A DNA stretch of 63,980 bases, the filler included, from Octopus bimaculoides (Eukaryota): assembly GCF_001194135.2 (NCBI RefSeq). It is 7 parts of 7 records of this genome, joined end to end, with 100 filler letters (N's around TTAATTAATTAA, not from the genome) between each part and the next. Parts side by side here need not be neighbours in the genome. Positions count along the whole stretch, not along the records: positions 1 to 14,115 come from NC_068997.1; 6 more parts are not named here. One strand, written 5' to 3'. This document shows, piece after piece, positions 1-14,115 of the stretch. The notes below the pieces were generated by a model. It saw only the letters and a list, made by a program, of their open reading frames with translations, was not told the origin of the DNA and did no database searches. The position numbers and the translations under genes are program-made. The first letter of the stretch is position 1. Each line of letters starts with the position of its first letter.

Positions 1-109
1 CTATATATATATATTATCTATATTATTATATGATTGAACGCCACGCATCCATTTGCAAGTAAGTTTATATATATATATATATATATATATTATATTCGGC
101 TATAGCCTC

Positions 110-2251
110 ATCACCCGTATAATTAGCCAGGTGATACACGAAAGAGTCATACCCAATGACTGGTGTAGCAGCACCATAGTAAACTGCTACAAAGGTAAAG
201 GTGACGCTTTAGATACAAATAATTACAGAAGTATTAAGTTGCTGGATCAGGTCATGAAAGTCACGGAGAGGGTCATAGACCAACTAATTAAGGAGAGAGT
301 TAGTTTAGATGAGGTGCAGTTTGGGTTCCTGCCTGGGAAAAGCACCACTGATGCTATATTTCTGGTAAGACAGCTGCAGAAGAAACATCTAGCCAAAGAT
401 AAACCCAGTACCTGACCTTTGACAGGTTTCCCGATCCCTTATCTGGTAGTCAATGAGGAAACTAGGGATAGACGAATGGTTAGTGAGAGCTGTGCCAGCC
501 ATGTACGGGGACGTTGTCAGTAAGGTGAGGGTTGGCAACGAGTACAATGAAGAATTCCGGGTAGAGGTAGATGTCCACCAAGGTTCCGTCCTCAGCCCCC
601 TCCTATTTATCATAGTCCTCCAGGCAATAACAGAGGAATTCAAGACGGGATGCCCCTGGGAGCTCCTCTATGCTGATGACCTTGCACTAATTGCTGAGTC
701 ACTATCAGAACTAGAGGATAAGTTTCAGGTGAGGAAGCAAGGATTAGAATCGAAGAGCCTTAGAGTCAACCTAGCTAAAACCAAAGTCCTAATAAGTAGG
801 CAGGTAGACAAACCACAAACCCCTTCAGGTAGATGGCCCTGCTCGATCTGTAGAAAAGGCGTAGGTAGAAACTCTATAAGATGTACCCAGTGTAAGCTAT
901 GGACACATAAGAGATGCAGCAATATCAAAGGAAGGCTAACTAGGAAGATAGTTTTTGTATGTGGCAGATGCTCAGGAGCCATCAACACTGACAATGTGCT
1001 GAGAACAACTTCCGCCACATTCCAGGGAGAAAAACTAGAAGTAGTTGATAGCTTCCGTTACCTAGGTACCCAAGTCAGTAGCGGGGGAGAGTGCGCTGAA
1101 AGTGTAATTGCTAGAATAAGAATAGCCTGGGCAAAGTTCAGAGAGTTCCAACCTTTGCTGGTGTCAAAGGGCCTCTTGCTCAGAGTAAAAGACAGACTGT
1201 ATGACGCATGTGTACGAACAGCCATGCTACATGGCATTGAAACATGGGCCGTGACAGCTGAGGACATGCGTAAGCTCGCAAGAAATGAAGCCAGTATGCT
1301 CCGATGGATGTGTAATATCAGTGTGCATACTCGACAGAGTGTAAGTACCTTGAGAGAAGAGTTAGACCTAAGAAGCATCAGTTGTGGTGTGCAAGAGAGA
1401 CAATTGCGCTGGTATGGTCATGTAGCGAGAATGGACGAGGATAGCTGTGTGAAAAAGTGCCACACACTAGCGGTTGAGGAAACCCGTGGAAAAGGTAGAC
1501 CCAGGAAGACCTGAGATGAGGTGGTGAAGCACGACCTTCGTACATTAGGCCTCACCGAGGCAATTACTAGTGACCGAGACCTTTGGAAATATGCTGTGCG
1601 TGAGAAAACCCGGAAAACCAAGTGAGACCATAATCCGTGGCCTCTGCCAGTAGTGTAGCCAGCTCACTTATTAGTACTTTACTTCATTGGACACTAAACT
1701 CTGCTTGCGAAGACCTGTTGAGGCAAGTGAAATCGAAATCGAACCAAATTCGATCACTCCCATGCCAACCTTTCCTTCATTGGACACTAAACTCTGCTAG
1801 CGAAGACCTGTTGGGCCAAGTGAATTGAAATCGTAATCGAACCAAATTCGATGACTGGCACCCGTGCCATTGGAGCACTCACAGCACCGTCCAAGCGTGA
1901 TCATTGCCAGAGCAGCTATCTGGCTCCCGTGCCGGTGGCACGTTAATAGCACCATTTGAGCGTGATCGTCATTGCCAGTGCCGCAGGACTGGCTCCTGTG
2001 CAGGTGGCACGTAAAAAACACCATTTGAGCGTGGCCGTCGCCAGTACCGCCTGACTGGCCCTCGTGCCGGTGGCACGTAAAAGCGCCCACTACACTCTCG
2101 GAGTGGTTGGCGTTAAGAAGGGCATCCAACTGTAGAAACTCTGCCAGATCAGATTGGAGCCTGGTGCAGTCATCTGGTTCGCCAGTCCTCAGTCAAATCG
2201 TCCAACCCATGCTAGCATGGAAAGCGGACATTAAACGATGATGATGATGAT
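110..2251 (+). mobile_element. 5'-truncated RTE-clade LINE with 3' UTR and (GAT)n tail
   Basis: The ORFs at 53-415 and 453-1514 carry RT motifs (NYRSIKLL, QFGFLPGKSTTDAIF, VHQGSVLSPLLF, LLYADDL, FRYLG) and the RTE C-terminus (RQLRWYGHVARM, RGKGRPRKT). The element ends in ...catgctagcatggaaagcggacattaaac(gat)n at about 2238-2251. Confidence 0.9.
453..1514 (+). pseudogene. RTE reverse transcriptase C-terminal half containing a PHD (C4HC3) finger
   Basis: 353-aa ORF; YADD is followed by C-x2-C-x10-C-x2-C-x4-H-x2-C-x14-C-x2-C (840-972) before FRYLG. The upstream RT portion is separated by a stop and a small deletion near 415-453. Confidence 0.85.
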
Positions 2252-2894
2252 TATATATATTATATATTATATACACACACACACACACTCGTCCAATTAC
2301 AAGAAAAAAGAGCAGAAACAGAGAAGGTCGTCGAGGTAGGTGATTTTGTTTTATCTGAGCTGGGTGTAATTTGTTATATTGTAATTTTTTGTTAATAAAT
2401 TTCGCCCAGCTCTGGAACAATTTCGCCCTGCTCTGGAACAATTTCGCTTGCTCTTGGCGGCTGCTGTTTTTTTATATTGTGAATTCTTTGGATTCGTTTT
2501 AAAAATGGGGGCATATCCTCGCCCGAACGATTAGAACCTGTGACAGTTGCTGTTGCAGTTACCGTTGGCTGTAGCCAGTATTGTGTTTGGATTTATTGGA
2601 TTTATTTTACCAATTACTGGAAAAAAAAAGATTCACGCCAAGGACCCTATCCACATTCGGCCGGGAGTACCTGTTGGCCAGGAAATTGGATTTTTGCCGT
2701 ATGAATTGTTTTTCTTTCTCCGTCTATCTTTCCTGATTTTTTCTTTCGTTTTGAACTGTTTATTTATTTTTTGGACTTCTTTGTTTTATTTTTTTTTTTT
2801 ACTGTTTCTGTTAACTTTTTGTGTATCTTTTTTTGAACGTTTTTCTTTGACCTTTGAACTTTCTTTGAACTTTTAAGACTTTTTCTTTTTGCAC

Positions 2895-4154
2895 ATGGCA
2901 AAAATAAACGGTGCCGCTGCTTTGGAGTGGGAAGCGGTCCCACCCAAACAGTGGATTAAAGATCTTGAGAAGAGGACGGTGGTACTGTGGACCTATTCTA
3001 CGTCGCGTGGTGCTATTGCCCACTTCGACAAGAATGTGATTGAGAAAGAGTTGGCAGACTACCTGCCAACTATAAAATTTATTTCTCGGGGGACCAAATT
3101 TGCAACGGTCTGGTTGCTGTTTGGTACCCCCGAGAAAGCTGGCAAATTTGCCAGCGAGCCCCTTGAGGAGCAAGAAATTTTGTTCTTCCCCACATATTGT
3201 GGGAGGAGGATGATAAGAGCCTGGGTATGTGGGCTACCCCGAGCACAGAAGCGGGATGGATTGGTGATACCATCTGGCAGGGCCTGGGGAATAGCGAGCC
3301 TAGGCTCTTAAATGTGAGAATGACGCCGGCAGTCGATTGGAAAGGGTCAAAAATAATTTTGACACTATGGACCCCATCGGCCGCAGGTGAAATTGTATTC
3401 CCGGACTTCCTAAAAATGGTTGGCTGCAGGTATCCGGTGATACTTGAGGGTCACCTCCTCCCCGAGTGGCATTCGTCCCCGGAGCCAGGCCACATTAAGA
3501 AGGACTGCCCCCGGGGCCGTAACATGGCACAGAAAATTAAGGTGTCCACCGCACCCCATTGTGGTGGGGGTGACGGTTGAAATTGTGGTGGTAGTTGCCT
3601 CCACGAAAAGAAAAAAGGAAGGTGAGTAACAACAGTTGCTCACCAAAAATGGGCAAGTGGCACAGGAGGCGGGGGGACAGTGCCCCCCGTGCACGCCAAC
3701 GCAGGCTCCTGCTCCTGTAGCCTCTGAAAGAAAGAGGAAAAAGAGGAGCAGAAGACAGTCAGCGGATGTTACTGTGCCGCCGAGTGAACGGCCCGTGGTT
3801 CACTTCCCACCAGCGGAAAAGGCTCCGTCAGTGGGAAGTGTGCCACTGACGGAGCAGCTTGAGGCCTCTTCCTCTGAGGAAGAGGAGGAGGAAGAGGAGG
3901 AAGAGTTTGTCCTCCTTTATCACGAGGGAGGGCCTGTAGAAGAATTTTTGGACGGCCTGGGCGACCGAGACCGTATGCACTCGGCCTGCACATGCATTCC
4001 AATATGGCCTCCGCAGGTGGCTGCGGAGGTAATAGAGTATCAGGTTTTGTCAAGGGTCATGGCGACCTTTGACAAGAAAGAATTTGCCTACCTGTTCACG
4101 GGCCCCGACTTGTCGGTGCAGAGTTGTCTGCAGGCGGCAAGTCAACTTGTTTGA
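2895..4154 (+). pseudogene. Gag-like ORF1 of a Tx1/L1 element (RRM-like N-terminus, decayed zinc knuckle, acidic tract)
   Basis: Three consecutive ORF segments (2889-3311, 3197-3580, 3636-4154) are linked by frameshifts. They include EPGHIKKDCP (a GHxxxxC knuckle remnant), a basic RKRKKRSRR stretch and a poly-E tract. Confidence 0.65.
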
Positions 4155-4181
4155 GGGCTCCGATGAGGAGGACTAATTTGT

Positions 4182-4448
4182 TAAATTGTAAGAGGTTTGT
4201 AACCTCATATTTTGTAATTCACAAGATGAAGAACTTACAGACATTGAAAATTTTGAGGACTAAAGTTTTTATTGTAAGAGGTGTAAAAACCTCGTATAAA
4301 TTGTAAGAGGTTTGTAGCCTCNNNNNNNNNNTTCACAAGATGAAGAACTTACAGACATTGAAAATTTTGAGGACTAAAGTTTTTATTGTAAGAGGTGTAA
4401 AAACCTCGTATAAATTGTAAGAGGTTTGTAGCCTCATATTCTGTAATT
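4182..4448 (+). repeat. About 114-bp tandem repeat in the 3' UTR, spanning a 10-N gap
   Basis: taaattgtaagaggtttgta recurs at 4182, 4297 and 4411. The 10 Ns stand where the first unit has the 11-nt atattttgtaa. Confidence 0.8.
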
Positions 4449-5864
4449 TATAGGAGAGAACATTGTTTTAGGGAGACGAGGGGTCGGCGGGCGCCACTTG
4501 TCTCCCTCATTTTATCATTTAATTTTATTATCATTCATCTCATTAATGTACTAGTCTAGCCCGCAACTGCTTCTTCTGTGTAATGCCCTTGTGGCAAATC
4601 ATATGAAATAAAGGAGCTGGCTTCTCACGCATACGTATTATCAGTCGAAGCGCTGAAGGAGGTTAGGCCACGCTAAGTAGCGTAGCGAATGAAGACAAGC
4701 TCAACTGCAAGGTAAGACTTTTTGTATTTTGGGTCCAGTGGGGGTTTGTTTGTTTGTAATATTTTTGTACAAGCAAGGAGTCCCTACTGGATTCTGTACA
4801 CTGGTTTGCCTGCAGTTGGGTAGAATTTGTTCACTTTGAGTGAAAAGTTTTTTTTCGCTTAATTGTAAGATTTGTGTCTGAGGGCGTATCCCGCTTCGAA
4901 AGATTTGTTCACGTTAAGTGGATAGCTTTTTGTTCTCACTTTATTGTGAGAATTGTTGAGGCGTATTTCGCGTCCAAAATTTGTTCACCTTTAGTGGATA
5001 GTTATGTTTCAAAAATTGTGAACATTTAGAAGATACTACAGCTTCTTTTTACCAATTTTTGTGAAAGCTGTGTTCCAAGTTGTGGCGTTCCGGGTTCAAG
5101 TTGGAGTACCAAATAGGCCTGGATTACCGAGTGGCCAGAAAACTTTTGGCTGTTTTTTTTTTTTTTTTTTTTTTTTNNNNNNNNNNNNNNNNNNNNNNNN
5201 NNNNNNNNNNNNNNNNNNNNNNNNNNNNNNNNNNNNNNNNNNNNNNNNNNNNNNNNNNNNNNNNNNNNNNNNNNNNNNNNNNNNNNNNNNNNNNNNNNNN
5301 NNNNNNNNNNNNNNNNNNNNNNNNNNNNNNNNNNNNNNNNNNNNNNNNNNNNNNNNNNNNNNNNNNNNNNNNNNNNNNNNNNNNNNNNNNNNNNNNNNNN
5401 NNNNNNNNNNNNNNNNNNNNNNNNNNNNNNNNNNNNNNNNNNNNNNNNNNNNNNNNNNNNNNNNNNNNNNNNNNNNNNNNNNNNNNNNNNNNNNNNNNNN
5501 NNNNNNNNNNNNNNNNNNNNNNNNNNNNNNNNNNNNNNNNNNNNNNNNNNNNNNNNNNNNNNNNNNNNNNNNNNNNNNNNNNNNNNNNNNNNNNNNNNNN
5601 NNNNNNNNNNNNNNNNNNNNNNNNNNNNNNNNNNNNNNNNNNNNNNNNNNNNNNNNNNNNNNNNNNNNNNNNNNNNNNNNNNNNNNNNNNNNNNNNNNNN
5701 NNNNNNNNNNNNNNNNNNNNNNNNNNNNNNNNNNNNNNNNNNNNNNNNNNNNNNNNNNNNNNNNNNNNNNNNNNNNNNNNNNNNNNNNNNNNNNNNNNNN
5801 NNNNNNNNNNNNNNNNNNNNNNNNNNNNNNNNNNNNNCGTTGTCATTGGTGCCTGGAGCCTGGC

Positions 5865-6305
5865 CATAAAATTTCGAAGGGAATGAAAAATAAAAACATT
5901 TTCCATCTAGCACCTGGACCAATTGCTTCTGACTTATTTTAGTATCAAATCTATCGCTTGCGCGGTAGATTTGAAAAATTAGAATGTATAAGCATGGAGC
6001 ATATACGGGATTGCCTCTGGGTGTACCTGCTGAAGAAGACTTTGCCTGGCAAATTATTTTATTTGCTAAAATAAGTCAGAAGTCAATGGTCCAGGAGCTA
6101 GATGGCAAATGTTTTCATTTTTCATTTCCTTCGAAATTTTATCCCTAATAGTGGTTTGGAACTTAGCTGTTCTTTCTAGCGTGAGGGAATCCTATGATGG
6201 ATACCGCTTATGTGTTTAAATGTATAGTGTGCTTATATGAATAATATATAGTCTATGGACTAAATTTTTACACGCTAGGCCACTGGTAGTAGAAATTTCT
6301 AATAT
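5865..6305 (+). mobile_element. Retrozyme-like element, copy 2: partial permuted unit with a 5' inverted arm and degenerate hammerhead
   Basis: 5950-6305 is collinear with the reverse complement of 9378-9903 but runs across that copy's terminal junction. 5865-5941 is an inverted repeat of about 6067-6143. The HHR remnant is GTACCTG-CTGAAGA-A-GACTT...AAGTC-agaagtcaatg-GTC-CAGGAGC (6023-6098). Confidence 0.7.
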
Positions 6306-6352
6306 TTCTAATTATTCCTGATAATATTAATTTATTGAAAATTATACATATA

Positions 6353-6384
<32 letters not shown>

Positions 6385-6488
6385 CGGACGTGAGTCGTCT
6401 AAGAGACTATGACTCAGGGAAAAGGTAATTTAACACTGTAAATAGAGTGGGTACATTAACCGAGATGTATAATATTATATATCCATCA

Positions 6489-6582
6489 CGGCTGATCTTA
6501 CCAATCGGTTTCGCGCAAGAGGTACAATGGAGTATTAGGTAACAATCCGATTATATAACCTTACGCTCATCAGAGTTAGCCG
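6489..6582 (-). ncRNA. Type I hammerhead ribozyme in a Penelope pseudo-LTR
   Basis: The minus strand reads CGGCUAACU-CUGAUGA-GCGUAAG-(40 nt)-CUUGCGC-GAAAC-CGAUUG-GUA-AGAUCAGCCG. It has the full conserved core, a 7-bp stem II, stem III ACC/GGU and a stem I with an internal loop. Predicted cleavage is after 6499. Confidence 0.85.
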
Positions 6583-6964
6583 ACATGGAAGAGAACATGG
6601 CGACAGCTCTCTATTGTCGGAGGTGGATTAACAACCGATTATCGGTTATTGCGAAAAAGGTGGTGAAACGAAAATAGGTCAGGTAATTTAGTTAAGAGTT
6701 ATGTGTTTACGTTCCCGTTAACTAGCGGTTCGGCAAAAGAGAATAAATAATAGGCGTAAGAAATAAATTGATTTGCTCGACTAAAACCCTTCAAGGTGGT
6801 GTTCCCTCATACTAACAGATTCAACAAAATATTTAATAGACATTCACTATTATCCTTTAGCTGTGCACCTAGTGTAAAAAGATTTTAGTATGTAGGCCTA
6901 CACCCGATAGAATAAATATTAGGCTTAAGAAATAAGTTGATTTGTTCGACTAAAACCCTTCAAG

Positions 6965-7500
6965 TGGTGTTCCCCAGTACTAATAGATTCAACAAAATAT
7001 TTGATAGACATTCCTTGAGATTATCCTTTAGATGTGCATCTAGTGTAACAAAGAGTTTAGTAAGTAGGCCTACACACGAGGCAGAGGCAGGGTGCTCATG
7101 CAGGGGTAACACAACTTGTCCGCTGAGGCAGAGGTAACAGCCATAGGACCCAATGGACAACCGAGCGTGCAGAAGTATGTGGGGGCAACGGGAGGCCCCT
7201 TCAGAAACCGCTTTAACAACCACAAATCCTCCTTCAATATCTCAGAGAGACGTAACGCCACAACCCTAGCCAAGTACGTTTTGTCTTTGAAACAAAGTGC
7301 CACAGAGTAAAGTATAAAGTGAAAATATCTGGAGAAATGCAACCATACTTCAATTACAACAGGAAGTGCAGGTTATGCCTGACTGAGAAGAGATCAATTT
7401 TAAAGAGTAGTCAACGCCCGGATGTTTACCAGAATAGCAGGAGTGAGGTGTTTAATCCTTGCCCACATCAAAGGAAGTACATCCTATCGTATCTCCTCAA
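6965..7500 (+). pseudogene. Penelope ORF C-terminus with GIY-YIG endonuclease
   Basis: FPSTNRFNKIFDRHSLRLSFRC; CSCRGNTTCPL; KYVGATGGPFRNRFNNHKSSF; LAKYVLSLK; CRLCLTEK; NSRSEVFNPCPHQRKY. Contains stops and frameshifts. Confidence 0.85.
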
Positions 7501-8074
7501 CCATGACTGCAAGTACAGGTCCCGCCTCGAACTTCCACCAATGTCCTCGGGCCCAGCAAAGCGTTTGACCAAGTCACATATCAATGCACCCTTATACACA
7601 CACGCACACACCCATAAGGCGGCAACCCCACATATACAACCCTAATATATACAACTTCACACTCATTGTACCCTACACACACACATTTATATAGACATAC
7701 ACCCATTTATATATACACACATTTATATATATATACATACACCCCCGGAAAAAATTATGCATATGACACCACTACACATCTCGCACACCTCATTCCCACA
7801 GGAGAACTATACATATCATACACCCCTTCCCCACAGCAGTACCACACTTAATAATGCACACATTCCCCACTAACACTTGAAGATAAATCTTACCAGTCTC
7901 ACAGTATACCCAACCAAGGGACATAATTCTTAATCTAATCCCTGGTCCTTTTTCGTTTCACCAACTTTTTTCACAGCAGCCGCTGACCGGTTGTGTTAAT
8001 TGGATTAACACTTCCGACAATAGAGAGCAGTCACCATATTCCCTTCCATATCGGCTAACTCTGATGAGCGTAAG

Positions 8075-8285
8075 AATCCTGGATAGGCACCACATTGTCA
8101 AGCCCCAACTTCTGCTCCATCTAAGGTAACAGGGAGTTCTTCAGGGCGTCAGATACTCTTTTGTGCCGATCTTCAAACCAGACTCAATTAAGTGTGGCTG
8201 CATAACACTTCCATCATTCACTGCGGCTCCAACTACCATCACAGAGTCTATATACGGTGATCCAACACAACGAATGACTTCTTGC
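8075..8285 (-). mobile_element. Tc1/mariner transposase fragment
   Basis: The minus strand gives SVMVVGAAVNDGSVMQPHLIESGLKIGTKEYL/DALKNSLLP*MEQKLGLDNVVPIQD, matching the VMVWG...Y...L.P...QD catalytic region. Confidence 0.7.
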
Positions 8286-9105
8286 CCTCAAACACTTCCT
8301 ACACCTTCGACCCAACCCCTAACCTGACACATCCACAATTCTTTGTCTGGCCAAAATTGTTCTCTCCCTCAACTGCTTCTCGTTCGTGGGGGAGTTTTAC
8401 CAACAGGTCTCGCGAGTGGCCATTGGAACGAGAATGGGCCCCAACTATACGAACCTGTTCGTTGGCTACGCTGAAGCCCAAATATTTTCAAGATTCACTG
8501 GTCCCACTCCCGAACTATACGGTCTTTACATTGATGAGTGTATCGGTGCGACCTCACTCTCCCGCAAACACCTAGACTCCTTCCTCTCTTTTGTCCAATC
8601 CTTCCATCCTGCCCTCGAATTCTCCTGTACCATTTCCAATACTCCCGTTCCCTTTCTCAACATTTCCGGCAACATACACAATTCCATTCTTACTACTTCC
8701 ATCCACTACACTGACTATCCACTAGCACTGACCACTTCCCAGCACCCACACCATCATCTACACACCCACACTTTACAGACGCACACAACCACACGTCAAA
8801 GTCACCAGCCCCTATCCACACGCACACATTTACACACTCTCACATACACACACGCACGCACACTTTCGTTTTGGGACCACAAGTACTTTATTATCTTCCC
8901 TTCTTCCTAGCTCTCCTGTCTAACCACCTTTGTCCAACCAGTCGTCATGATTGGCCGCTAAATCCACAAGTTTTTTATTCTCTTTCTATTTTACATTTCT
9001 GTTGAAGAGTATAGGCTCGAAACGTAAAAGACGTTGTCACCTTCCCGAGCGTCAAACTAATACACCTGCATGTTGTTTATACACCAGTCTTCGTCTTCTG
9101 TTTTT
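8285..9105 (+). mobile_element. Penelope-like element B: RT fragment plus pseudo-LTR
   Basis: GEFYQQVSRVAIGTRMGPNYTNLFVG, LYIDECIG, SFHPALEFS, PFLNIS and TTSIHY are Penelope RT motifs. The terminal segment is homologous to 34835-35045. Confidence 0.8.
8995..9030 (+). ncRNA. Atypical minimal hammerhead-like motif (CUGUUGA core)
   Basis: uuu-CUGUUGA-A-GAG-UAUAGG-CUC-GAAAC-GUA-AAAG, with palindromic ACGU where stem III would be. A6 is replaced by U. Confidence 0.45.
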
Positions 9106-9162
9106 CNNNNNNNNNNNNNNNNNNNNNNNNNNNNNNNNNNNNNNNNNNNNNNNNNNNNNNNN

Positions 9163-9194
<32 letters not shown>

Positions 9195-9298
9195 TATATA
9201 TATATATGTATATATGCATATATATATGCACATATATATATACATATATATATGTATTGTGTATATATGCATCATATATACATTGTATATATATATAT

Positions 9299-9340
<42 letters not shown>

Positions 9341-9377
9341 ATAGATATATACATTATATGCAACATATAAAATTAGC

Positions 9378-9903
9378 GTACGTTTAAACACAAAAGAGGC
9401 GACCCTTAATAGGCAGCCTTACATGCTAGAAGGAACAGTCAAAACGCCCAAAACTACATTTAATAGCAATTTCGAAGGGAATGAAAAATAAAAACTTTTA
9501 CCTAGTTTTTTACAGCCATACCTAGATTTCGAACTCTAATTATTAAATAAAATAATTTGCTAGGCAAGGTTCTCATCAGTGGCTACACCAAAACAAGTAG
9601 CATATAATTTAGAGACAGAATAACACGTGTTTCATCCTTATATATTATAATCTTTCAAATTCACCGCGCAAGCGCGGTTTCAGTCGACAGCAAATAAAGA
9701 GATGCCGAATTAACGTCAGAAATTACTAAAATCATATTCATAAAATAAGATAGGGTAGCCAAATTTTAGAAATTTCACTACCAGTGGTCCAGCATGTATA
9801 AAAAGTCAATAGACAACATATTTTCCCTATCAAATTAATGTACATTTAAACACAAAAGACATTACCCTTAATAGGCAGCCTTACATGCTAGAAGGGGCAG
9901 TCA
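9378..9903 (-). mobile_element. Retrozyme-like non-coding element, copy 1: 462-bp unit plus about 60-bp terminal direct repeat
   Basis: The direct repeat tttaaacacaaaaga...cccttaataggcagccttacatgctagaagg..cagtca occurs at 9383-9441 and 9845-9903 (period 462). There is an internal HHR and no ORF. Both flanks are TA-rich microsatellite. Confidence 0.75.
9511..9587 (-). ncRNA. Minimal type I hammerhead ribozyme
   Basis: The minus strand reads UGUAGCCA-CUGAUGA-GAAC-(34 nt with an AAUUAUU/AAUAAUU hairpin)-GUUC-GAAAU-CUAG-GUA-UGGCUGUA. It has an 8-bp stem I (two G-U pairs), an intact core and a palindromic CUAG loop 3. Predicted cleavage is after 9519. Confidence 0.9.
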
Positions 9904-10231
9904 TATATATATATTTATGTATAATATATAGACATTATATGTAACATATATACATATAAACATTATACATATTAAAACTACTATAAACATAGTTTATATA
10001 TTTATATAAAATAAGTGTTCTTTTGTTCGTTTATTTGTTTCAGTCATTTCGAGTTGCTACTATTGCTCATCATTTGCTCGATTGAGGAAAATTTTGTGAG
10101 GTAAGTGCTGAGCATGCCAAGTCCTCAGATACAACAATAAGTCAAGGTCTTTCAATTCCAACTAGTTTCTCTTGATCTGGTTTTACGGAAAAGACTTGGG
10201 TGATGAAAGTTATGTATATATATGATGAAAG

Positions 10232-10279
<48 letters not shown>

Positions 10280-10317
10280 CATACATACATACATACATAC
10301 ATACATACATACATACA

Positions 10318-11393
10318 TCACCCTAACAACATCTCCATCAATGGCCTATCTGTTTCTCCAATATCTGATGAGGAATCCTACAGATACCTGGGAGTAGATG
10401 AAAACGTATCATACGAAGGTACTTGTAACAAGGAACGTGTTACTAAGGAATACAGAAATCGGGTTAGGAAAATATGGACCTCGAAACTCTCTGCACTCAA
10501 TAAAGCAATAGCCCGCAATGTGTTTGCAGTACCAGTACTCGTACCGACATTCAGGATACTTGACTGGACGATCGATGAAATCCGAGCCTTTGATGTGAAG
10601 ACCCGGAAAATACTAACGAGCACGAACAACTTTCACGTCAATAGCGATGTAGACCGCCTATACCTAAAACGAAATAAAGGAGGGAGGGGCCTAACATCAA
10701 TTCAGACTGCCTTTGAATGCCGTGTCATATCTCTTCGACATCATCTCATAACCACCAAGTGTCGAAGTGCACCCCTTGATGAAGTCTGCAGACATGAGGT
10801 AAATACCATCATGAGATTGGGAAGGCAACTACTTGACAAGCATTCCTTATTCGACAAACCTGATCTCTTACCCAAACAAATTGCAAGACTCTACCGTAAC
10901 ATAACATCAGAGGAGAGGATGAATGCATTCCAGCAGAAGACCATGCTTGGCTACGTTAACAGAAAGCTCCAGGGGGATAACAACATTGACAACCAGAGCA
11001 GTCTATCGTGGACAAACAATCGGGTCACCAACTTTCACTTTAAAGGGTATGCCTTTGCTATTCAAGAACAAGAAATAGCAACCAAATTCCTAATAAACAA
11101 AGAGACAGAGAGGCGGGGAAAGCGCCACAATGTAATAATCGATGCAGACTCTGTGGAATCAGTATCGAAGATATCACCCACATCATTAGCAGCTGTCCAA
11201 AAATGTCATCACGGTATTACCTACCTATGAGACATGATGTTGTGGCCAAGACACTGTACAATGAAATCCGCCGACAGGATAACCCCGGGGCTAAGGAGAT
11301 GAAAACCCATAATGAGGTAGAGGCTATTACCACTCACAATATGAAAGAGTATTGGTGGAATGTCCCAATAAAAACCTCAATAAAGTGCAGACA
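10318..11393 (+). mobile_element. R4/Dong-type (RLE) non-LTR retrotransposon, 5'-truncated and cut by a gap
   Basis: YRYLGV, NSDVDRLYLKRNKGGRGL, FAIQEQEIAT, YLPMRHDVVAK and EYWWNVPIKT, with frameshifts. Confidence 0.8.
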
Positions 11394-11924
11394 TNNNNNN
11401 NNNNNNNNNNNNNNNNNNNNNNNNNNNNNNNNNNNNNNNNNNNNNNNNNNNNNNNNNNNNNNNNNNNNNNNNNNNNNNNNNNNNNNNNNNNNNNNNNNNN
11501 NNNNNNNNNNNNNNNNNNNNNNNNNNNNNNNNNNNNNNNNNNNNNNNNNNNNNNNNNNNNNNNNNNNNNNNNNNNNNNNNNNNNNNNNNNNNNNNNNNNN
11601 NNNNNNNNNNNNNNNNNNNNNNNNNNNNNNNNNNNNNNNNAAAGATATGTAAAACTTTCCAAACATTTAGCACATAAATACATATGCATGCATCTAGACA
11701 TGAAAGTATATACATAAAAACGCATCCATAAAACAAACATACAAATCTGCGCATACACTAACACCAAATACTGCACACACACACACATGTGCACAAATAC
11801 CTAGATGATGTTGATAAAAGTTCCAATGAAGGAACCTTGAATCTATGTTAGAGTCCGGCTCTTTCTCTATGGACAAGAAATACAGAAATGAAACTGATTG
11901 TTAACATACATACATACATACATA

Positions 11925-12897
11925 CAGCCTTGGCCAAAAGTATTAGGCCACCCCAATGTTTTGGGGTTCTGCTGTCTCAATGTTAATGAAATGCGTGCAC
12001 ATGGTAGATTATGATATATTTCACAATATGCATTAATTTTAATATCTGGTTGACCCTCCTTTAGCATCAATTACGGCTTTTATACTGCTTTTATACAAAA
12101 TTAACTTATATTTCCTTGATTATTTCAGAGTTTTATGCTAAAGTGCATTGTAGATACAGTTAATAAACAATAAAATGCCTAAAACAAGGGAGTTGAGTGC
12201 GTGTGAGCGAGATCAAATCGTAGCTCATCATGAAAATGGAATGTCTCAAAGGCAAATTGCTCAGAAAATGAAATGTTCTCGATGTGCAGTGCAAACGACT
12301 CTCAAGCACTTCAGAGAGACAAAAGATGTGAAGACAATACAAAGAACAGGCAGAAGAAAGGTTACATCACCTCGTGATGATAGATCCATCATCCGTCAGT
12401 TGCTCAGAAATAGAAGCAAAATATCTTCGGAGCTCTGTGCGGACTTTAACAAGGCAAATACTTCACAAATATCAACCAGAACTGTTAGAAGAAAGCTTGT
12501 AGAGTACGATCTGAAAGGCTGTAACGCCAGGAACAAGCCATGGGTTTCTGAAGCGAAAATGGGAAAACGTCTTCTCTGGGCCAAAAACCACTCAAATTGG
12601 ACCAGTGAGCAAAGGTCAAAAGTCATATGGTCTGATGAAAATAACTATGAGGTAAGATAGTACATGTATTCGATCAACATATAAACTTAATGTAACTGGT
12701 TTGTTGCCCAAAATATATAAAAGGGTATGGGTATCCAACATAAAGCTAATATTATTTTTCATGTTTTTAGTCAGGTTTTCTGTACATCTGTTTTTATGTC
12801 AGGGAAGGATAAATTCAGCTACCTATGCTTGTATGTTATCAGATGATTTAGAGCCATCAATTGCTAAATTGCATCCAAGAGAATTTGCATTTTGATA
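11925..12897 (+). mobile_element. Tc1-like DNA transposon: left TIR plus partial transposase, 3' end missing
   Basis: TA followed by CAGCCTTGGCCAAAAGTATTAGGCCACCC. ORF 12175-12660 has paired-type HTH domains, TGRRKVT and VIWSDE. A later segment reads GRINSATYACMLSDDLEPS...FAF. Confidence 0.9.
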
Positions 12898-12899
12898 TA

Positions 12900-13180
12900 G
12901 AAATTCTTCTCTTCTTTCCTATGGTAAATTCTCTCGAGCTGTGCGATGTTATTCAACATTTTGATGTAAATTTCTCCTCCTCTTTTCTGTGATATATATT
13001 CTCTTGCTACTCTATGTTGATGGAGTCCTGCTTGGCTCAAGTTAACCCGTGCTTCTCTCCGTCGTGCAGCATTTATGTTTCTTACAGTTTCTCGTCGGTT
13101 ACTGTCAATCCTCTTCGCCTCTCCTGTTGACGAGACTGGTTGCTTCTCTTCTCTGGCTAGCCCACATCAATACTCATAAT
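12900..13180 (-). mobile_element. Possible Helitron Rep/Hel N-terminal fragment
   Basis: Arg/Glu-rich helical repeats on the minus strand (RRETVRNINAARRREARVNL; RRRNLHQNVE*HRTARENLP*ERRE) resemble Helitron N-termini. No catalytic motif was seen. Confidence 0.3.
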
Positions 13181-13821
13181 GGGATTTTAATAGTTACAAA
13201 AAATAAGAAAATGTGTGTTTAAGCAATGATTTCAAATTTATGAAAATAAGAGTGTAGCACATTTACAGGGTTTCAGTGCACATAATTATTTTCAAACACC
13301 ACTATATTTTCTGCTTCGTATCCATTATTATAGCATGGATTTTAATGAGCAAATATTTATTAAAACATACAAGTAACAATAGATTTAAATAGAATTACCT
13401 TCCACACGTTCTTTAACTTTCAAACTTTGATATCCACGGACCTTTAAAGATTTCATATCTGAACCTCAAAATTTTTTATTACCTATCAACCTTTTATAGA
13501 AAATTAAACCCCCTTGTACTCCTACCTTTATTATATTTTAAGTAGTTATTCTATTTTATTTTTTCTCGTCTTCCTATCCTACTAATGGCATTATCCTGGT
13601 GTCTTATTAAAATCCAACCATGTTACCTGAGATACACTAACATAGGGGCGGGTATCATTTGAAGATCTGGTTGCTATTTGTCGCAAGTCGGGCAACTGCA
13701 TAGATGCTTTGTTGTAGTATCAATTGCTGAAAGAGCAACAGATAAGAGAAAAGAGTCCCGAATGTCGCCCAAAATTAGAATACTGCATTCAGAGTCTGTA
13801 TCTATATACCAACTTTTCTTT

Positions 13822-13854
<33 letters not shown>

Positions 13855-14079
13855 AATCTATCTATCTGTCTCTCTATCTATCTATTGTCTCTCTCACTTT
13901 CTCTCTTTCTCTCTCACTTCCTCTGTGTCCCTCCTTTCTCCTGTTTTAATTTAACAATGTGTGTATGTATGTATGTATGTATCTACTTTTTTATTATCTA
14001 TGTATCTATTTTTCTTTATGTATGTATCAGTCTACTCTGAAAATACTGATAAACATTTTTCCTCTCTTCCTTCCAGTCA

Positions 14080-14115
<36 letters not shown>

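Follow-up and report, generated by a model that had tools for sequence, protein, structure and literature searches.

How did a 462-bp non-coding repeat with a hammerhead motif come to stand as slightly more than one copy of itself in the genome of Octopus bimaculoides, and does that length record copying from a circular RNA? The window analysed here is a stretch of 63,980 nucleotides (nt) of RefSeq assembly GCF_001194135.2, made of seven genomic parts joined with filler, and the features described lie in its first part (positions 1 to 14,115, from NC_068997.1). A first-pass annotation had taken the element at 9378-9903 for a retrozyme-like insertion bearing the signature of a circular RNA template. 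The best reading of the two loci found in the window is that both are old insertions of one retrozyme-class repeat. The first of them, copy 1, is, with a probability of roughly 0.7, an aged insertion of a non-coding hammerhead retroelement, a non-autonomous passenger of Penelope-like elements (PLEs) belonging to the class of "non-LTR retrozymes" (LTR, long terminal repeat). The retrozyme-like character proposed earlier is borne out by a short, non-coding, hammerhead-bearing unit, by stems kept through compensatory changes in a diverged copy and by a Penelope-like context, while a circular template is not specifically supported.

Copy 1 was delimited by its period-462 self-match as 9370-9903 on the minus strand, with its sense 3′ end at about 9378-9370. 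The sense strand of the unit is the minus strand of the window at this locus, s1 corresponding to 9903 and s462 to 9442. The unit-derived DNA from 9370/9378 to 9903 spans 526-534 nt, which at a period of 462 bp makes 1.14-1.16 units and agrees with the earlier description of a length slightly above one unit. The surplus is a redundant segment present at both ends, with a sense 5′-terminal copy at 9828-9903 (core 9845-9903; blastn) and a sense 3′-terminal copy at 9366-9441 (core 9383-9441; repeat search and blastn), both on the minus strand. The direct repeat reported between 9383-9441 and 9845-9903 with a period of 462 is real: blastn aligns 9378-9441 with 9840-9903 at 57 of 64 nt (89% identity), and a weaker extension relates 9366-9441 to 9828-9903 at 86.8% identity across 76 nt. 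Mismatches in the 64-nt core number seven and fall into clusters, GGCG/CATT as one block and AA/GG as a pair, with a single one besides.

The unit has a GC content of 33% and contains no open reading frame (ORF) longer than 35 amino acids, the longest having exactly that length, so that it is non-coding as claimed. No tRNA was detected in it by ARAGORN, and no Rfam match to tRNA, 5S or 7SL RNA was found; its identification as a short interspersed nuclear element was dropped, with no tRNA present and no pol III head detected. As a circular 462-nt monomer, it is predicted to fold with a minimum free energy (MFE) of -103.2 kcal/mol (z = -2.3) and 60% of its bases paired. The repeat has the form of a short, non-coding, low-GC unit (about 150-1000 bp) with a type I hammerhead.

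The hammerhead motif lies at 9511-9587 on the minus strand (s317-393, with the cut after s385) and was identified by descriptor scans with shuffle controls and by covariation with the second copy, with no Rfam match. Stem I pairs 9587-9580 with 9518-9511 over 8 bp and is open, as in type I. The two halves of the core are CUGAUGA at 9579-9573 (C3 = 9579) and GAAA at 9530-9527. Helix II (GAAC/GUUC, 9572-9569 with 9534-9531) has 4 bp, the G10.1-C11.1 closing pair coming first, and holds a 34-nt insert (9568-9535) that branches into two small hairpins. The helix III region, AUCUAGGU (9527-9520), contains the palindrome CUAG within the loop UCUAGG, and the site is GUA (U16.1 = 9520, A17 = 9519), with a predicted cut 3′ of A17. 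Read along the minus strand, the RNA is 5′-UGUAGCCA - CUGAUGA - GAAC (34 nt) GUUC - GAAA - UCUAGG - U A^ - UGGCUGUA-3′. The conserved positions of a type I hammerhead core are all present (C3 U4 G5 A6 N7 G8 A9, G12 A13 A14, A15.1-U16.1 and H17), and the components listed in the first-pass annotation, from the CUGAUGA/GAAA core, the GUA site and the 8-bp stem I to the CUAG loop and the cut after 9519, were all recovered.

A strict descriptor (CUGANGA, helix II, GAAA, A15.1...U16.1, H17 and stem I), scanned on both strands, has a single match in the window, which is the copy 1 site. With a stem I of at least 8 bp and a stem II of at least 4 bp, none of 3000 dinucleotide shuffles of the window gave a match, and 62 of 3000 (2%) passed at a very relaxed setting. 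The descriptor had no match in 74 kb of other eukaryote-like loci, even when relaxed. Because the motif was absent from both the shuffles and these 74 kb, it is not a composition artefact.

A second copy of the unit (copy 2a) was found by blastn and by local alignment to the concatenated unit at 5955-6345, in the opposite orientation to copy 1, its sense being the plus strand. It runs from s230 to s462 and on from s1 to s173, covering 406 of the 462 positions (0.88 unit) at 76.5% identity. It is circularly permuted relative to copy 1 and contiguous across s462/s1, the point at which the copy 1 insertion begins. Start and end phases differ between the two copies, copy 1 being s1-526/534, and their sense 3′ ends, at s~72 and s173, are about 100 nt apart in unit coordinates. 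Variable copy ends had been expected of such a family, and the difference in phase between the two copies in the window counts in favour of this expectation. A further piece, copy 2b, is a 77-nt inverted repeat at 5866-5942 on the minus strand, 91% complementary to 6066-6142 (unit s~361-437), and lies head-to-head with copy 2a, the two 5′ ends facing each other.

Copy 2a carries a degenerate hammerhead at 6022-6099 on the plus strand, recognized from its sequence and by structural alignment, with CUGAAGA at 6030-6036, a GUC site (C17 = 6091) and stem I CCUG/CAGG. Comparison with copy 1 reveals four double compensatory changes, namely A-U to G-C, C-G to U-A and G-C to C-G in stem I and A-U to G-C in helix II. 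The three changes in stem I concern the three pairs nearest the core, on both sides each time. Across the 18 pairs of the structural alignment, 91.7% of cells are paired, compared with 25-40% when the partners are slid by 1-3 columns. This covariation comes from two sequences, copies 1 and 2a, and is limited evidence to that extent; it suggests that the ribozyme fold was under selection while the two lineages diverged and is hard to explain otherwise.

These observations bear directly on whether the hammerhead could be a chance look-alike in an unrelated AT-rich interspersed repeat that was never a ribozyme. The absence of an Rfam match and an MFE structure that is not a hammerhead (z = -1.0) would be expected of a look-alike, and the many windows scanned at the first stage make a rare motif possible by multiple testing. 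Such a coincidence would nevertheless have to account for the empty shuffles and the 74 kb of other loci without a match, for the double changes in stems I and II, for a canonical GUC at the site of copy 2a and for a PLE-like context, PLEs being known carriers of such motifs. A chance origin is accordingly regarded as very improbable indeed.

The PLE context consists of decayed remnants of two different types, which lie within 1-2 kb of the unit copies and never inside the unit, so that the repeat and PLEs co-exist in the window. A reverse transcriptase (RT) fragment at 8335-8710 on the plus strand is Neptune/Nematis-like, with the RT motifs ..AIGTRMGPNYTNLFVGY.. and ..YIDE.. and 47-65% identity to four database fragments; the matches obtained with it were metagenome proteins only. 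At one homologous locus, the RT is followed by an ORF with HTH_animal and GIY-YIG domains, with a CX..CxxC linker before. A profile search with this RT gave 1850 matches, with no cephalopod record among the 120 matches listed. The fragment itself is decayed and is followed by CA-rich low-complexity sequence. The second remnant, at about 7083-7500 on the plus strand, is endonuclease-like and contains CSCRGNTTC (CxCX5C), YVG..R..NNHK, CRLC..E and N..CPH; its homologues have the RT motifs YRDDGL and FLDV upstream. No Pfam match, including GIY-YIG, was obtained for this remnant or its homologues, and its motifs, as read by eye, fit the "Hydra" PLE clade as described (PMC8557442).

With such neighbours, the repeat might be the terminal (pseudo-LTR or untranslated) part of an ordinary autonomous PLE, heavily 5′-truncated or internally deleted as a one-off, rather than a propagating family. 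Dispersed minimal hammerheads in animals are mostly ascribed to truncated PLEs (PMC4209133), PLE coding remnants lie nearby at about 7083-7500 and 8335-8710, and the other hammerhead of the window (6584-6489) does belong to a PLE remnant. The repeat differs from a PLE terminus, however, in its 462-bp period without coding capacity and in the lack of an RT-GIY-YIG ORF between its repeated ends. Moreover, copy 2a, although about 24% diverged, keeps the same non-coding order across s462/s1, so that the arrangement without an ORF predates both insertions. Both PLE coding remnants lie antisense to copy 1, and the unit has no similarity to the adjacent PLE 3′ region. The adjacent remnant was rejected as a parent of the unit, the score of their local alignment being below the shuffle mean. 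The first-pass annotation had held that copies with fixed ends sitting on coding Penelope ORFs would speak for an ordinary pseudo-LTR; this is not what the two copies look like, given the antisense position of copy 1, the different phases and the absence of shared sequence with the PLE. Derivation from the end of a single autonomous PLE is thus considered unlikely.

The flanks of copy 1 carry a candidate target-site duplication (TSD) of 25 bp, at 9345-9369 on the left and 9926-9950 on the right, which match at 23 of 25 positions, a score reached by 2 of 1000 first-order Markov nulls. The two sides of the candidate TSD have diverged by 8% (2/25), about as much as the terminal repeats (11%), as would be expected if both pairs had been identical at insertion. 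On the sense 5′ side of copy 1, a TA-rich 22-nt stretch (9904-9925, within the TRF row 9902-9952) separates the element from the right duplication; this stretch could be filler, a "tail" or a microsatellite. About 30 nt past the sense 3′ end, TRF places (TA)n and then (TG)21 microsatellites at 9163-9339. Both ends of copy 1 adjoin microsatellite or TA-rich sequence and not further unit sequence. Copy 2a, at its sense 3′ terminus (6345), likewise borders on a (TA)21 microsatellite (6343-6384; TRF). Two hammerhead elements meet there tail-to-tail by their 3′ ends, copy 2a on the left and the inverted copy of a PLE remnant on the right, which suggests that the microsatellite was targeted repeatedly.

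PLE insertions were described to include partial tandems (pseudo-LTRs), an adjacent inverted 5′-truncated copy and microsatellite targets that obscure TSDs (PMC8557442). In biochemical work on a PLE, AT-rich DNA was nicked, both strands were extended and RT initiation was internal (PMC11167929). The partial tandem, the inverted partner and the AT-rich or microsatellite target of this type of integration are all found here, the TSD as a candidate only. Since the priming of both strands of one target predicts 5′-to-5′ pairs with their 3′ ends outward, it predicts the arrangement seen for copies 2b and 2a.

The same flanks help to judge whether copy 1 could be what is left of a tandem satellite array, or a stub of one produced by assembly collapse, in which case the 1.14 units would be accidental and hold no record of an insertion template. 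Against such an origin, both ends adjoin microsatellite directly and no further unit sequence, the candidate 25-bp duplication with a divergence (2/25) like that of the terminal repeats fits a discrete insertion, and the terminal segments, with 7 mismatches in 64 positions, do not represent identical reads that were collapsed. Arguing the other way, hammerhead repeats often occur in arrays, of which newt satellite 2 is the classic case (PMC7229834), PLE-type tandem and inverted structures break short-read assemblies (PMC8557442) and the assembled piece has four N gaps, one of them 210 bp from the element. An origin as a satellite stub appears quite improbable on balance.

Several findings nonetheless count against reading the two loci as a retrozyme family, the first group of which concerns the ribozyme. 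Comparison with the Rfam hammerhead models, suggested at the outset as a check, gave no match, whether over the whole window (E≤1) or over the 121 nt from 9490 to 9610 (E≤10), and the Rfam scan of the window, with both ribozyme regions, returned no hammerhead family, only microsatellite artefacts. The TA/TG/ATAC microsatellites at 9161-9371 and 10248-10318 gave sub-threshold matches to miRNA families (mir-297, mir-3149 and others), which are low-complexity artefacts. A 34-nt helix II insert is atypical for a hammerhead, and the Rfam models evidently do not accept long inserts in this helix. The MFE structure of the 91-nt copy 1 RNA is not the hammerhead fold (z = -1.0): a non-hammerhead monomer, in which UGCCUAG of the insert pairs with CUAGGUA at the cut site, is predicted at -16.5 kcal/mol versus -8.6 kcal/mol for the constrained hammerhead. 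For the dimer, the alternative fold is favoured at -39.4 versus -32.4 kcal/mol for the double hammerhead, a gap of 7 kcal/mol. The first-pass description of an "intact minimal" hammerhead therefore stands for the core rules and fails for the Rfam match and the MFE fold.

The remaining points concern the copies and their setting. Both copies 2a and 2b have GAAG in place of GAAA (G15.1), and copy 2a also has A.A at 10.1/11.1. These changes are expected to cripple cleavage, and the copy 2a hammerhead looks inactive from its sequence. With one ribozyme per locus, genomic copy 1 would be unable alone to yield a processed monomer. The family amounts to two diverged loci in 14 kb, and a tandem array of at least two units with a ribozyme in each is lacking, copy 1 having 1.15 units and copy 2 having 0.88 unit plus the 77-nt inverted piece. 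An exact-pattern scan of JGI metagenomes for copies of the unit produced one chance 22-mer match with no extended similarity, and no copies were found in prokaryote genomes, in viral contigs or in three eukaryote-like loci, including 20.9 kb of Octopus vulgaris chromosome OX597814.1. An autonomous PLE with unit-homologous termini was not found, and the remnant next to the unit is dissimilar to it. The candidate TSD lies in low-complexity sequence with a 22-nt periodicity and is a candidate only, and a longer tandem array might be collapsed at the N gaps of the assembled piece.

How such a hammerhead could cleave is indicated by its helix III, which has 1-2 bp in the monomer and 8 bp, formed intermolecularly through AUCUAGGU, in the dimer. 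The constrained double hammerhead is predicted at -32.4 kcal/mol versus -17.2 kcal/mol for two single hammerheads. A short helix III with a palindromic loop 3, acting as a dimer, is a published hammerhead pattern (PMC4209133), and self-cleavage by the copy 1 hammerhead is plausible only in this dimer mode.

The circle model is a published hypothesis for retrozymes (PMC7229834), and the first-pass annotation had treated the length of copy 1 as its signature. A cDNA of more than one unit, however, shows only that the template was longer than one unit. The inference of a circle overreaches, because any template of more than one unit gives the same result and PLEs make partial tandems as a rule. 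For the PLE studied biochemically, the transcript of a multi-copy locus was proposed as the in vivo template; in vitro, reverse transcription started internally, hammerhead cleavage was not needed and unprocessed RNA was the dominant substrate (PMC11167929). The two ends of copy 1 both lie away from the ribozyme cut site, which is intact in the middle of the insert, and an uncut site in this position fits a re-ligated circle and an uncut multimer alike. Similarly, the differing 3′ phases (s~72 and s173) are compatible with a template whose 3′ end was not fixed and do not separate the two forms. The template of copy 1 is estimated to have been a linear multimer at 60% and a circle at 40%.

For a PLE passenger of this kind, the following course of events is proposed. 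A source locus would first be transcribed on the strand that corresponds to the window minus strand at copy 1. The RT and GIY-YIG endonuclease of a PLE would then nick AT-rich or (TA)n DNA and prime reverse transcription of the repeat RNA at a point some 150 nt downstream (3′) of the ribozyme site. The cDNA would pass an uncut (or re-ligated) ribozyme and run for 1.15 unit lengths, which implies a template of more than one unit, be it a circular monomer or a tandem transcript in linear form. At the copy 2 locus, both DNA strands would have been primed, giving the head-to-head pair 2b/2a. If active at all, the hammerhead would work in its double form, across two units of one multimer. Cleavage of the multimeric RNA would then release monomers, which could be circularized by ligation.

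The window contains a second hammerhead, unrelated in sequence to the first, at 6489-6584 on the minus strand. It was found with a bulge-tolerant descriptor, which gave 2 loci in the window versus a mean of 0.002 per shuffle. It has CUGAUGA (C3 = 6573), GAAA and a GUA site (A17 = 6499), a helix II of 8 bp with a 37-nt extension, a helix III of 3 bp closed by a tetraloop (ACC-GAUU-GGU) and a stem I with one mismatch and one bulge. Its MFE structure is the hammerhead three-way junction, yet it has no Rfam match. It lies in the left arm of inverted repeats (6560-6683 and 7941-8074) that flank the Hydra-like remnant and correspond to a head-to-head inverted 5′-truncated copy. The right arm (7941-8074) has the 5′ half of the hammerhead only and ends at 8074. 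The region from 6385 to 8074 on the plus strand as a whole is a 5′-truncated PLE remnant with a 169-bp tandem duplication (6740-6907 and 6909-7079).

Long, branched helices II are found in two sequence-unrelated cases, in the 462-nt repeat and in the Hydra-clade-like PLE remnant at 6584-6489, and this shared feature is the one most worth following. Within the helix II domains at 9535-9568 and 6521-6558 (minus strand), segments complementary to helix III and the cut site were noted post hoc (UGCCUAG/CUAGGUA and AAUCGG/CCGAUU). Such complementarity could serve as a conformational switch, or it could be coincidental. For copies 1 and 2a, a compensatory change linking the helix II insert to the region of the cut site was considered and dropped, the paired segments not being at homologous positions. 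It is tempting, if rather doubtful at this stage, to propose an octopus hammerhead class missed by current models, in which the core halves stand 42-54 nt apart through a branched helix II with a 6-7-nt switch segment complementary to the cut site. Craig et al. (2021) reported "HHR_half_core" cases with a spacing of 35-50 nt that did not fit descriptors (PMC8557442), and the proposed class, if true, would correspond to these unexplained cases. Ribozyme-bearing repeats, and possibly circular RNAs, would then be far commoner in cephalopods than the Rfam hits in giant squid suggest.

Other mobile elements surround these loci. An ORF of the long interspersed nuclear element (LINE) type at 53-1514 on the plus strand encodes an RT with a PHD-finger-like C-terminal part and is split by a frameshift; its 453-1514 portion has as best named match a predicted protein of O. 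vulgaris at 80% identity. The 20.9-kb O. vulgaris locus has repeats in common with the window at 77-85% nucleotide identity, and the repeat at 1895-2278, which contains a 69-bp tandem repeat, recurs several times there. An ORF at 10380-11394 (plus strand) resembles the C-terminal part of a non-LTR RT (..RLYLKRNKGGRGL..), has no Pfam match and runs into a gap at 11395. The segment 12175-12660 (plus strand) encodes the N-terminal helix-turn-helix (HTH) domains of a Tc1/mariner-type transposase (HTH_Tnp_Tc3_2 and a Sleeping Beauty-like HTH).

The first-pass annotation was not aware of such a family in cephalopods, and no description of retrozymes in this group was found in the literature searched. 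Earlier work has nevertheless come close: a genome study of the giant squid mentions 235 Rfam hammerhead-1 hits in passing (PMC6962438), cephalopods are known to have PLEs (PMC8557442) and other molluscs to have retrozymes (PMC7229834). It has also been argued that non-LTR retrozymes derive from PLEs (bioRxiv 10.64898/2026.07.22.740005). The 462-bp repeat is a further example of a known element class, not a new class, and it leaves the current picture of retrozymes and PLEs unchanged. If confirmed genome-wide, it would extend hammerhead-bearing PLE passengers to cephalopods. If confirmed, it would also mean that annotation by covariance models undercounts hammerheads with a long helix II, both hammerheads of the window having escaped Rfam. 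The two loci form a compact case of PLE integration, with variable phase, a length above one unit, head-to-head pairs and (TA)n targets, and could help to distinguish circles from tandem transcripts as the templates of passengers.

Compared with metazoan non-LTR retrozymes, for which unit ranges of 150-450 bp and 51-972 bp were published (PMC7229834; bioRxiv 10.64898/2026.07.22.740005), the octopus repeat shares a short non-coding unit of 462 bp, a low GC content (33%), a type I hammerhead and co-occurrence with PLEs. TSDs in that class exceed 4 bp where present, which the 25-bp candidate resembles, and dispersed monomer-like derivatives, reported to be common, are like the copies in the window. 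The differences lie in the absence of a tandem array, the two loci having 1.15 and 0.88 units with one ribozyme each, and in a minimal ribozyme without loop I-loop II contacts and with a 34-nt branched helix II insert. The cephalopod host also belongs to a clade absent from the retrozyme papers searched. With Schistosoma Sm-alpha and newt satellite 2, the repeat has in common that these are interspersed or tandem non-coding repeats with type I hammerheads, and the newt and axolotl ribozymes need dimers, as in the mode proposed here. Unlike these, it has no tRNA-like or pol III head and no long array, and its ribozyme is not of the canonical loop-loop type.

The resemblance to PLE pseudo-LTRs (PMC4209133; PMC8557442) extends from the hammerhead, with its CUGANGA...GAAA core and the dimer activity implied by a palindromic loop and a very short helix III, to the insertion, with partial-tandem terminal redundancy, an inverted partner and microsatellite or AT-rich targets. 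The octopus repeat departs from them in having no RT or endonuclease ORF between its repeated ends and a period of 462 bp instead of about 3 kb. Its stem I has 8 bp versus 4-5 bp in Schistosoma PLE families, and its helix II has only 4 bp before branching. The Poseidon PLE of Anolis (PAc; PMC11167929) is similar in its AT-rich target and in the uncut ribozyme site within the insert, and the head-to-head pairs seen here fit both-strand extension as for PAc. In PAc, the cut is made 26 nt into the ORF and RT starts at 111-118 nt, a distance of about 85-92 nt (PMC11167929). The 3′ end of the octopus insert lies about 149 nt from the hammerhead cut, and both distances are of the order of 100 nt downstream. 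Unlike PAc, the octopus repeat is non-autonomous, and its copies, which end about 100 nt apart, give no evidence of a defined initiation stem-loop.

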